A DNA stretch of 63,381 nucleotides, counting the filler, from Octopus bimaculoides (Eukaryota), in NCBI RefSeq assembly GCF_001194135.2. It is 8 parts of 7 records of this genome, joined end to end, with 100 filler letters (N's around TTAATTAATTAA, not from the genome) between each part and the next. Parts side by side here need not be neighbours in the genome. Positions count along the whole stretch, not along the records: positions 37,929 to 44,492 come from NC_068987.1; 7 more parts are not named here. One strand, 5' to 3'. The position numbers and the translations under genes are program-made. The notes under the pieces are model-generated. The model ran no database searches and was not told the DNA's origin. It saw nothing but the letters and a program-made list of their open reading frames with translations. Shown here piece by piece: positions 39,639-44,592 of this stretch. The number at the start of each line of letters is the position of its first letter. Positions within the stretch are counted from its first letter, which is position 1.

Positions 39639-42600
39639 TTTTTTTATATATATATGCCTGCTGATATATGACCTACGTTGGACTCCTCATTCGCATAATC
39701 ACCGAACTTGGAGCTTAACTGTTTTCTGTCCGCAGCACTTACTCATCATTACCTGACACCTTTGGGTCTTCTTGACACCATTACCTCTCTTAACCTATAT
39801 ATATATATATAGTATAGCTATGTTTTATAGTGTGCGGTGAAGTGTGGTACAACTGTCCATGGTTTTAAATGAGCCTACGATAGAGAGTAGTAAGTGTCTT
39901 TCCACTGTGGTTGTTGGAGTTATGAAGTTTGCAACTTTTATTTTTGCCATCGATTTTACATGTTATATCAGTCATTCTGTTTACTCTCGGGTAAATATTC
40001 CTGCTGTGTGTTGTAAATAAAAAGGTTATATTTATGAAAAATATAGCTAGTGTCGGGTATGGTGCGTAGCGATGCACCATACAAAATTCCCGGAGTATGC
40101 GCGAGATTTTTATGCATGTATTAACACGCAAAGCAGAAACAGTGTGTAAGACTGAGTATGATAGATATGCAAGATAGAGGGATGAATAAATACATGCATG
40201 TATACATAAATCTAAATAAAAGTATATATTTCTAAGTTGTGTAGACATATGAAGAGTGTAATGAGAGGAAGATCGGATGTAGGTGGTATGGAGAGTGTTA
40301 AAGAAAGAGAATGATAGAAAATAATAATATTGTAGACCATGTAAACATTGTCTTTTTTTTATAAAGCGATGATAGCTTAGCTATTAGTTTAGATAGTTTG
40401 CGGCCTGAGCGTAATTTGGAGTATAATATTAGCACAATAACTCTTTGTTGGGTTGTAAGTTGTTGGTGACGAAATTTTCCTTAGGACGAGCTTAATCAAA
40501 TGAAATTATCACGAGCTTTGTTTCGTATTACATTGATTTATTGATGTTGTTCTGACGGTATTTATTTAGCATGTTCAAACGGAAGGAACTGTCTCAGATC
40601 TTGCTTAAGTATAGAGTATTGCACCGAATTGTTCTTATAGTAGAGATTCCGGTTAAATGTTTCTGATAGTAGCAAGACGAATCTCTAACAGGATCAGAGC
40701 TGAGATTTGAGGTTAAACCGAGCTAACTCTATTTTTTATCGAGCCCTAAGAATCTTAAGGCCGGTTACACAGTTTGCATAGCGTGTAAATGNNNNNNNNN
40801 NNNNNNNNNNNNNNNNNNNNNNNNNNNNNNNNNNNNNNNNNNNNNNNNNNNNNNNNNNNNNNNNNNNNNNNNNNNNNNNNNNNNNNNNNNNNNNNNNNNN
40901 NNNNNNNNNNNNNNNNNNNNNNNNNNNNNNNNNNNNNNNNNNNNNNNNNNNNNNNNNNNNNNNNNNNNNNNNNNNNNNNNNNNNNNNNNNNNNNNNNNNN
41001 NNNNNNNNNNNNNNNNNNNNNNNNNNNNNNNNNNNNNNNNNNNNNNNNNAAGGCAGAATTCATCACGGCATGATGTAGACTCAGAATATAAAGCGCCCAG
41101 ATAAAATTCCTCTAAGCATTTTGAGCGACGTGTCAGCGATTCTACCTGCTCGCCTATTACGCATGCGTAAATACTAAAAGCAATACCTCGCTTGTTCGCT
41201 TAGACAGTGAGATGTATTAGCTACATCTTCCTTGGTTTAATGTGTCATCTTAAAAAAATTTAAAACCAGATTGCACAATGAATTCTTGACTATACAAAAA
41301 CCAATGCCTTAGCTTTTCAATTCCAGATTGATTTGTAGGCTATGGTCATGAAATACAGTGTGTCGTGAGCATGCTAGAGAAGAAAGACACAATTGTTCGT
41401 CCTGTCAAAGATTTCTTCCAAAAGGAATAGCGACGAAGTAAGAGAGACGCGAGAGGGAATGGAAAGAAGAGCCGAAGAGAGAGAGAGAGAGAGAGAGAAT
41501 GAGAGAGAGAAGAGAGAGAAGCGAGAGAGGAGAGAGAGAAGGGGAGAGAAAGAGAGAGAGAGAGAAAGAGAGAATGAGAGAGAGAAGAGAGAGAAGAGAG
41601 AGAGAAGAGAGAGAAGGAGAGAGAGAATAAGTGAAGAATTGACCCACACCACCTCCAGTCTTAATCTTGTAGAGTGTTTATTGAACACGAAAGGATGTTA
41701 GATAACGTTGTCCATGCATGGTATTGAACTCAGACCACAGACAGTCGCAATATATAAATCAAGGTATCCATGCCACGGCTATAATGGCCCTACTACCTCG
41801 CAGACTGACAGGAAAAAAAAAAGAAGATTGGTCTAGACTGGAATGCCTTTATTTATAGATTTGTTCGATCAAGTATAAAATGGGGCTAAATAGCAACAAC
41901 AACAACAACAGCCTCAACAACAACAACAACAACAACAACAGCAACAACAGCGAAACCAATATTAAATACGACGGGAACACACACATAAATATACATAGCT
42001 TGTTTTTATCTATATATTCACTTTGTGAACGGAAAACAAAGTAATATAACAAAGAGACGGAAGAAAATGTTGGAAGGTGAACAGCTACGAAGATTTACAG
42101 ATACTGTCAATTGTCCATTATATACATATATATACATACATATATATATNNNNNNNNNNNNNNNNNNNNNNNNNNNNNNNNNNNNNNNNNNNNNNNNNNN
42201 NNNNNNNNNNNNNNNNNNNNNNNNNNNNNNNNNNNNNNNNNNNNNNNNNTGGGTTTATGTGCCTGCCCTGTGAAGGTATATTGGCAGCTAGGACGCCAAA
42301 AGTCAATGGGTGGATGCACCATCGGGTTTGCCTGATATGTTATGATCATTCGGGATTCAGTGGATGATGGGCGAGTGAGGTGATCCACTGAATTTTGCCT
42401 GATTGATGGATGCACTGCCAAGCTTTACCCTTTGGGATACTACCTTGGCGTGGTGAAAGAGCTTACGTCCGTGTGGGGAGGTATGTCGGATGGGTTGTAA
42501 AACAATGCTGAATATGTGCCCTTGCATAGACAAACTAAATGTGTCCCTTGCCCCATGGCGGTGCCAGCCAGTCTGGTGGGGGCCATGTAGTGTGGGTGAT

Positions 42601-43519
42601 CTTGATTGAGAGGAGTGGGCCTTTTCGGAAGTGATAGGTGGGCTGCCGATAGCCTGCCTCCTGGTAAAATCGACTGGCCGACATAGGGTACATTGTGACC
42701 CGCGTCAATGGTGAGTGAAGACCCGTTTCGGGCGGGGTTGCGCAGTACGTTATGACCCATTCGTCTCGGTGAGGTCCGGTGTGTCATGGCCTCTTAACCC
42801 CAGCAGGTGGATGACCACCGAGGTTACCACTGGTTTTTCGTATATCGTTTCGACTTTCGCCGGTGTGTGATACCTCGCCGTTTCGGAGGGATGGATGCAC
42901 TGCCGCGCATTTGCTTTCCACGAGCTGTTGGCATTGGGTGGATGCACTGCCCTTCGTTGGCCGGAAGATGCACTAGTGAGTTAAGGTGAAGGTATGTCTA
43001 CTGTCCCTAGTTGTGGGGCTGTGCCTGGAGATCGTTTCGCTTATGCATTCATGGAAATTGCCGCCTGCGGATATCGTAATATATAAATAAATAAGTTTTA
43101 AAACATACGGTAGCCAGGGGCCGTATAAACTGTTGACCCCCGGTCAGGGTGGTGCCTGGAGGTTAAAGCCGGGCGTGTTGCCCTTCCACGTCGGGCCTAA
43201 TAAGAAACGGTGGGATCATTTTGGTTCCAGCCTTTCTACCCACCCCGGTGGCGGATAATGAGCCATTTCTGCTACCGGTTAATCAGTGGCTCACCCAACT
43301 GACTTTTAGATATAGATGATACAATTGATTTCTCAGTGATCGTCGCTGTGATCNNNNNNNNNNNNNNNNNNNNNNNNNNNNNNNNNNNNNNNNNNNNNNN
43401 NNNNNNNNNNNNNNNNNNNNNNNNNNNNNNNNNNNNNNNNNNNNNNNNNNNNNNNNNNNNNNNNNNNNNNNNNNNNNNNNNNNNNNNNNNNNNNNNNNNN
43501 NNNNNNNNNNNNNNNNNNN

Positions 43520-44208
43520 GAACATACGGCGGTGTGTAGAATGAGGGATGAGATGTCTACGGCGCGAGGTTACAGGAGGATCGAATGGGAGGAGTGAACA
43601 TACCAGACATCTCGACGGTAAGAAAGACTAGTAGTTCGATGAACGAAGTAATACGATGAAGGAATATGCCATATCGCACCAATGGTATATCGACAAGAAA
43701 TTCGATGAACGAAGTAACGAGTACATTGAATGAAATGAATGAACATACCATGTCACTCCGACGGTGTATCGAAAAGAAAGATGAGACATCCAATAAACGA
43801 AGCAAGAAGCAAATTGAGTGACAAGATTGAAGATACAGAGACGATTCAATGAGAAGTATGAAAATCGAGAAGACTGAATGAGAAGGATGCAAATACTAAT
43901 CGCCCCGATGGTACTTCGATAGAAAGATGTGATGCCGAAGCAGCAGCGAGGATAGTTAAGGAGATCAAGAAGATACTAATATTGAGACCCAAATTGAAAA
44001 TTAAAATAAGATACCTGGATAAGACGAAGTAACGACCCGTCGGCGAAGAATGATGAATATTTTAATATTTTTTTAATTTGTTTTAATAGATGGTGTCCTC
44101 CCGAATGTGATATGGGCCTGCTCGACACTTAAAGCATTGGCACCTGGTAAGACCACCCACGTCAAAAACAGGGAAGTGATGACAATATATATGTCAACAA
44201 GAAATAGA
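43520..44208 (+). mobile_element. Putative decayed 3' end of an R2-type non-LTR retrotransposon
   Basis: Abuts 28S precisely at the R2 target site. Weak by-eye motifs in order (GGVNIP, RTNGISTR, RRC...ET, RYRDD) with many stops, then an AT-rich 3'UTR-like stretch. Confidence 0.45.
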
Positions 44209-44492
44209 TAGTCAAATGCCTCATCTAATTAGTGACGCGCATGAACGGATCAACGAGATTCCTACTGTCCCTGTCTACTGTCTAGCAAAACCATAGCCAA
44301 GGGAACGGGCTTGGACGGATCGGCGGGGAAAGAAGATCCTGTTGAGCTTGACTCTAGTCCGGTTTTGTGAGAGCACACGATAGCCGTAGCATAGGCGGTA
44401 GCATTCGCGTTGCCCCGCGCGCTGGCTGCCGTCACCGGCGGCGCGACGCTCTTTATCGGTGGTTGTCACGTCGGCGTTTCCTCGCCGCTCTT
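44209..44492 (+). rRNA. 28S rRNA fragment (domain IV region), probably pseudogenic
   Basis: TAGTCAAATGCC-TCATCTAATTAGTGACGCGCATGAA...GGGGAAAGAAGATCCTGTTGAGCTTGACTCTAG matches the conserved eukaryotic LSU core. It carries a 3-nt deletion (TCG) and C>T changes, and ends at a scaffold linker. Confidence 0.92.
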
Positions 44493-44592
44493 NNNNNNNN
44501 NNNNNNNNNNNNNNNNNNNNNNNNNNNNNNNNNNNNTTAATTAATTAANNNNNNNNNNNNNNNNNNNNNNNNNNNNNNNNNNNNNNNNNNNN

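Follow-up and report, generated by a model that had tools for sequence, protein, structure and literature searches.

A decayed 28S rRNA fragment joined at the R2 site to a non-coding repeat in Octopus bimaculoides: a probable orphan copy of an rDNA insertion

Introduction

The target of R2 elements in 28S rRNA genes is 5'-AAGG/TAGC-3' (PMC3581529), the slash here and below marking the insertion point or join. Full-length R2 elements are 3348-5417 bp long, with an ORF of 3030-4170 bp (PMC3581529), and some fish R2 contain 28S-derived sequence (PMC5035012). Extra-rDNA and degenerate copies are both documented (PMC2718515, PMC4370867): Bacillus rossius harbors a degenerate R2 (PMC4370867), and in several Drosophila species the non-rDNA copies are 1-2% diverged (PMC2718515). 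Drosophila R2 SIDEs are short, the R2 5' ribozyme being fused to the R2 3' end (PMC3414825), and the Pokey piggyBac element inserts at TTAA in the 28S hot spot (PMC3849761).

The window analyzed here is a stretch of 63,381 nucleotides, filler included, joined from eight parts of the Octopus bimaculoides genome (GCF_001194135.2), and all positions count along it. In the part at 37929-44492 (NC_068987.1), a 28S fragment begins at the R2 site behind unrelated sequence. Insertions at the R2 site are familiar, as are dead copies of them, and the main use of this locus is in annotation: it flags a 28S pseudogene and a family of rDNA-insertion repeats likely to stay unclassified in repeat libraries for want of coding similarity. 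What goes beyond routine is that the last 2 kb is non-coding and repeat-rich, yet ends in a base-exact R2-site junction in three species.

The locus resembles R2 (R2Dm, R2Bm, and relatives) in its base-exact 3' junction at AAGG/TAGC without poly(A), in an orientation in the window consistent with co-transcription with 28S, in a depth that would fit occupation of a small fraction of rDNA units, and in its presence in related species. Unlike R2, the 1.8 kb read here contains no reverse transcriptase, zinc finger, restriction-like endonuclease, Rfam R2 3' element, or ribozyme, and its 3' end is non-coding for at least 1.96 kb, sub-repeats included, which goes beyond published layouts (PMC3581529). 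The Drosophila SIDEs (PMC3414825) are likewise non-coding, located at the R2 site, few, and in need of R2 protein in trans, as the present element would be, but they are short and carry the ribozyme, whereas the element here is at least 2 kb long and no ribozyme was seen. Degenerate and extra-rDNA R2 copies share with this locus being dead, persisting, being duplicated by genomic turnover rather than transposition, and having diverged from array copies; they retain recognizable ORF remnants, whereas the window copy has no coding remnant, and the decayed 28S flank that it keeps is at least 284 nt long. Pokey would leave ...TTAA/element/TTAAGGTAGCC, whereas here 28S resumes at TAGCC without TTAAGG. 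The site of I-PpoI and of the L1925 group I intron lies in the same few conserved 28S bases, but such an intron would leave both exons. We know of no other element that leaves 28S resuming at TAGCC.

The 28S Junction

A cmscan search against Rfam gave an LSU_rRNA_eukarya match on the + strand (101.4 bits, E 5.4e-24). It is confidently aligned from UAGUCA (44209-44214) onward, opposite UAGCCA at model position ~2280. The aligned start at 44209 falls right behind the model sequence CUCUUAAGG; 5' of it, posterior probabilities in the alignment are low and its gaps are large. The window bases ahead of 44209 are ...GTCAACAAGAAATAGA, which is not 28S. When the 85 nt of 28S that normally lie 5' of the site were aligned locally to 43520-44208, the score of 18 was that expected by chance (shuffle mean 17.9), the query, also aligned to 42250-43353, being a yeast/general eukaryote consensus and not a database sequence. 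The presence of 28S-derived sequence within the element was rejected on the same alignment. Because the cmscan alignment starts at 44209 and the upstream alignment is no better than shuffles, the breakpoint is both exact and abrupt: 28S similarity sets in at 44209 (TAGTCAAATGCC), the base that follows the insertion point in the R2 target. The original prediction, which held that the 28S fragment begins exactly at the R2 site and that non-28S sequence precedes it, is thus borne out on both points.

The 3' junction between element and 28S therefore lies at 44208..44209 on the + strand, an insertion at AAGG/TAGC that is precise on its 3' side both by cmscan and in the main-form contigs described below. 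Combining the window and main forms, the junction reads ...AAGAAA(C or T)AGA/TAG(C or T)CAAATGCC. No 5' junction, that is, 28S ...CTCTTAAGG on the 5' side of the element, was seen in the piece.

Recurrence of the Join

The comparison material consisted of Logan contigs: X1, X2, X3, X7, X9, X10, and X14 are runs of the same species, X15 belongs to related species B, and X16 to related species C. The join is spanned by contigs of 572 nt in X9 (depth 54.9), 603 nt in X2 (113.2), 375 nt in X10 (203.6), and 630 nt in X14 (5.2); it is also present in contigs of 135 and 171 nt in X3 and X7, respectively, and in a 193-nt contig of species B. In species C, contigs end at a join on the same 28S base, ...AAGAAAGAAA/TAGCCAAATGCCTCG. 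The join is reproducible, being spanned by independent contigs in four runs (X2, X9, X10, and X14) and in species B; it is not an assembly artifact, although a chimeric join at 44208 had been named among the outcomes that would refute the prediction. An rDNA array edge, also raised at the outset, is an unlikely alternative, given that the join occurs in multiple copies and in three species alike.

Most contigs (X3, X7, X9, and X2) have one main form, ...AAGAAACAGA/TAGCCAAATGCCTC and next GTCATCTAATT, as in canonical 28S; the junction itself reads ...CAGA/TAGCCAAATGCCTCGTCATCTAATT, and in these short k-mer contigs the canonical flank is readable for ~25-30 nt. Further diverged, single-copy variants keep the site, e.g., AACTACAAGTAGACA/TAGCCAAATGTCTCG, and others have TAACC. 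Such diverged variants at one site suggest repeated or ancient events at a single base.

Scans of metagenomes with the junction and with an internal 28-mer gave no matches. Run X14 is probably an RNA run, with a single junction-spanning contig at a depth of only 5.2. Two poly(A) RNA-seq runs yielded four partial reads and none, respectively; this is essentially no reads, and we count it against the reading preferred below, although the expression results as a whole say little either way.

Extent and Copy Number of the Element

The scaffold piece at 37929-44492 is interrupted by N runs at 40792-41049, 42150-42249, and 43354-43519, and another starts at 44493. The junction is situated on a 973-bp contig (43520-44492) between two gaps, and 43520 is merely the contig edge, the first base after a 166-N gap, and not a biological boundary. 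The 3'-terminal 689 bp of the insertion element (43520..44208, + strand) is 63% A+G, non-coding, and without poly(A), and is built from degenerate sub-repeats of 30-145 bp (GAACATACC...CGACGGT...AGAAAGATG) that form six repeat families, D1-D6. Across the gap, 42250..43353 (+ strand) is also non-coding, is ~50-56% GC, and has GGATGCACTGCC-type sub-repeats over 42250-43000. Word depth over 42550-43353 (310-340 in X3, 190-260 in X7, and 17-33 in X1) matches that over 43620-44222 and amounts to ~3-7 times single copy. The gap of 166 N (43354..43519) is entered from the left by 111 nt (a 361-nt contig of X3) and from the right by 66-79 nt in X1, X3, X7, X9, and X10 (a 73-nt overhang before 43527). 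Given equal depth on either side of the gap and overhangs from both sides, the gap lies inside the element, and the repeat spans at least 42250-44208, i.e., at least 1.96 kb of non-coding sequence. The extent of ~690 bp first proposed was thus too short, the element reaching at least 42250 at the same copy number.

Depth for a single copy was taken from the unique flanks at 39840-40790 and 41050-42100. It was ~85 in X3, compared with 275-340 for the element and 47,000-117,000 for 28S; the corresponding values were ~50, 190-260, and 10,000-12,000 in X7 and 6-18, 55, and 2,500-7,900 in X9, and in X1 single-copy and element depths were 4-7 and 17-35. Overall, the element is present at ~3-9 times single copy, and the joined form amounts to ~0.4-2% of 28S depth, which fits a low-occupancy rDNA insertion.

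At its 5' limit the picture is less uniform. The first ~250 bp (42250-42500) has a depth of 1,200-5,300 in X3; at 15-60 times single copy, this segment must be shared with a more abundant repeat. A 112-nt contig overhang in X7 continues the repeat 5' of 42250. The upstream scaffold neighbor, 41050-42100, is single copy apart from microsatellites, but the link from it to the element crosses the 100-N gap at 42150-42249 beside a (TA)n run, and this counts against reading the locus as an orphan.

The overhang before 43527 contains 'TTAAGG' (TTAAGGCAAGATGGAACATACC...) and was considered as a possible join between 28S and the 5' end of the element, but was rejected because it matches the element's own sub-repeat family. 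A contig that runs into canonical 28S is expected, in a 31-mer graph, to break off within 30 nt, and the 3' junction contigs behave in this way; the contigs overhanging 43527 run 66-254 nt further, too long for canonical 28S. Together with the sub-repeat match, this identifies the overhang as internal sequence.

Two further observations concern the scaffold. An 823-nt contig of X3 bridges the 258-N gap at 40792-41049, implying a true gap of ~137 nt and confirming order and orientation there. In X1, X2, X3, X7, X9, and X10, a single-copy contig joins 42484-42513 (...GGTTGTAAAACAATGCTGAAT) directly to 43533-43610 (GTGTGTAGAATGAG...), departing into other sequence after 43610; the contig represents a relative of the repeat, rearranged or more distant, at another locus.

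Coding Capacity and RNA Structure

The original prediction regarded the upstream sequence as the decayed coding end of an R2, and this view did not survive. The + frames contain 12-19 stops each in 43520-44208 and 17-23 in 42250-43353, and no ORF with a reverse transcriptase and C-terminal restriction-like endonuclease occurs in 42250-44208, the 5' part of the element being outside the piece. Two of the motifs on which the idea was based, GGVNIP and RTNGISTR, do occur in frame +3 of 43520-44208, but as that frame carries 12 stops in 229 codons they are chance strings. Pfam searches at E<=10 in all frames of 42250-44208 detected no reverse transcriptase or endonuclease, the lone match being a sub-threshold Ninjurin in one minus frame of 43520-44208; over 41050-42149 they returned low-complexity noise only. 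Searching all + frames against every PDB chain with phmmer gave one random match (E = 0.8) and none to solved R2 proteins. Exact-product look-ups for two minus-strand ORFs found nothing. In the runs examined, Logan contigs on the repeat are at most 630 nt long, too short to reach the 5' part of the element.

At the RNA level, the Rfam R2 3' element had no match, a miss that weighs little given that R2 3' ends are poorly conserved between taxa. No HDV-like ribozyme was detected by Rfam in 37929-44492 at E<=1, and both the conserved R2 ribozyme core (CCTCCTCGTGG-like) and a tRNA-like head were absent. Folding of the 3' end showed no excess stability over shuffles (MFE z -1.1 and +0.3), and the variant positions there formed no compensatory pattern. 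Rfam matches to mir-1277 and mir-929 were far below threshold and were discarded; the former sits on the TC/TA repeat at 38749-38943 and is an artifact.

Decay of the 28S Flank

The 28S fragment occupies 44209..44492 on the + strand, corresponding to ~2280-2566 of the LSU model, and its 3' side is cut by the contig end. Relative to the main form, C is replaced by T in the window at 44205 and at 44212 (TAGTC vs TAGCC), so that the element's 3' end reads ...AAGAAATAGA rather than ...AAGAAACAGA; overall, the element part is ~2.9% substituted with respect to main-form contigs (16/561 and 17/592). Compared with deep rDNA reads, the 28S part has a 3-nt deletion after 44220 (TCG or CGT, the placement being ambiguous) and substitutions at 44263, 44273, 44287, 44294, 44423, and 44427, and the canonical high-depth contig differs at nine of 84 positions over 44360-44443. 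All of the listed 28S changes, which are mostly transitions, lead away from the universal 28S consensus. Against high-depth rDNA contigs, the flank has at least 14 substitutions in 196 compared positions (~7.1%), the reads having been compared on either side of 44323-44359.

The fragment thus combines a 3-nt deletion, substitutions, truncation at the R2 site, and a single-copy neighbor, the features of a 28S pseudogene or orphon, and on the sequence it is classed as a pseudogene. Alignment to the species' consensus 28S had been proposed as a check; against the deep 28S contigs, the copy looks like an orphan in that it has diverged by ~7% plus the deletion, differs from the main element form as well, and lies in the scaffold beside DNA of single-copy depth. 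From scaffolding across N gaps, we infer that the copy lies outside the homogenized rDNA array.

The flank is more diverged than the element (7.1% vs 2.9%; Fisher p = 0.011). Had a single block simply decayed as a whole, this gap would not be predicted, and it too is counted against our preferred reading; it could possibly arise from sequence exchange among element copies, or from main-form copies residing in partly decayed units. The major junction contig of X10 (depth 203.6) has the same 3-nt deletion but retains TAGCC, and the window copy consequently belongs to a small subfamily. The deletion at 44220/44221 is minor or absent in X2, X3, and X9, and junction subfamilies vary in copy number between individuals.

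Origin of the Insertion

We consider it probable, with moderate confidence, that the window contains a dead, pseudogenized orphan, copied from a piece of rDNA that bore the 3' part of an element specific for the R2 site. By this reading, an R2-type protein would have nicked 28S between AAGG and TAGC, and the freed 3' hydroxyl would have served as the primer for reverse-transcribing the element RNA from its 3' end (target-primed reverse transcription). Duplication would then have followed, either of the whole inserted unit or of a block in which the non-coding 3' part, at least 2 kb of it, was still attached to the 28S downstream, and a duplicated block may have left the homogenized array and decayed. 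Target-primed reverse transcription would account for a base-exact 3' junction without poly(A), and an exact nick-site junction, copies of different ages, and occurrence in three species, all without poly(A), are what R2-type target priming produces. It is this junction pattern, together with 28S resuming at TAGCC as we know it from no other element, that leads us to see the 3' part of an R2-site element here. The 3' end lacks poly(A), and the sense strand is purine/A-rich, both typical of R2 and LINE elements. We infer that the element either descends from R2 or was mobilized by R2 machinery; the putative R2 identity of the upstream sequence is drawn solely from the insertion site and not from homology.

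Several results weigh against the orphan-insertion reading. R2 homology is absent from the 1.8 kb of readable sequence by Pfam, PDB, Rfam, and the ribozyme core; the equal depth over the whole block and its few copies fit block duplication as well as they do retrotransposition; and a non-coding 3' sequence of at least 1.96 kb exceeds canonical R2 layouts. The absence of excess stability at the 3' end and of any visible 5' junction also counts against it.

What kind of element left this 3' part can be addressed only tentatively. One possibility, which we hold with low confidence, is a long (>2 kb), wholly non-coding, non-autonomous element resembling the SIDEs and composed of degenerate sub-repeats, which would have parasitized R2 integration machinery, been kept at the R2 site in at least three related species, and shed orphans with 28S flanks. 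A complete, non-coding form bounded by both junctions would make it a rare non-autonomous R2 passenger outside Drosophila and, if so, a natural template for the 3' RNA features that an R2 protein needs.

It is somewhat unlikely that the sequence belongs to a complete, autonomous R2 with an unusually long (>2 kb), repeat-rich 3' UTR, the ORF of which would lie 5' of 42250 and have been lost to a gap or mis-scaffolding. The exact junction suits such an element, as does the continuation of the repeat 5' of 42250 in other runs (the 112-nt overhang in X7), and the Rfam miss would be explained by the wide variation and lack of sequence conservation of R2 UTRs across lineages. On the other hand, the published lengths allow only a 3' tail much shorter than 2 kb (PMC3581529), and the higher copy number of 42250-42500, at 15-60 times single copy, points to a mosaic rather than to one UTR.

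An origin without any retrotransposition is improbable. A double-strand break at the R2 cleavage site would, in that event, have been repaired once, long ago, joining downstream 28S to an unrelated repeat, and the hybrid would have been duplicated and inherited by three species. The failure to find R2 homology upstream and a copy number that is low and uniform over at least 2 kb would both follow, and the diverged junction variants look mutually homologous near the join, so that they could share one event. Insertions of different ages are nevertheless a better fit to a main form with a canonical flank alongside older variants with decayed flanks, and neither the main form nor several diverged variants show a microdeletion on the 28S side. 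Repair joins rarely keep the exact nick position.

Finally, an assembly chimera or the unique edge of an rDNA array, suggested by the isolation of the 973-bp contig between gaps of a draft scaffold and by the frequent mis-assembly of rDNA, is barely credible, as contigs of 193-630 nt span the join in X2, X9, X10, X14, and X15, the join in X16 is at the same base, and the joined form is at multi-copy depth where an array edge would be single copy.

Other Possible Insertions and Repeats

The same stretch of 28S bears other joins. At 44263, unrelated sequence (...ACAAGACTGATCAGAAATTACAAATAGC(A or G)G, >255 nt) is joined to 28S ~55-60 nt past the R2 site in X2, of the same species, and in X15, of species B. 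This position is within ~3 nt of where the R1 target-site duplication starts, and a second rDNA-specific element probably has its 3' junction here. At 44221-44224, ...ACACTGTATTTCGTTGATTAATCCTCGTCG is joined to 28S 10-15 nt past the R2 site (X3, X7, and X10), which may represent a further type of insertion in the same hot spot. Over 44360-44492, many differing low-depth 28S-like contigs (depth 6-220 in X1 and X3) accompany the canonical one, and some of them continue into A-rich or unrelated sequence; it appears that decayed 28S fragments are numerous in the genome.

The remainder of the piece is also rich in repeats. The region 39000-39840 is a very high-copy interspersed repeat, with a word depth of 10^3-10^5 compared with ~85 for single copy in X3, and has many deletion variants and thousands of matching contigs. 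Dense microsatellites at 38749-38943, 41475-41626, 41894-41949, and 42119-42149 comprise (TCTC)39, (TA)19, an AG-rich tract with a 75-bp higher-order unit, (CAA)18, and TA/TATATACATA runs, and their depths reach millions.
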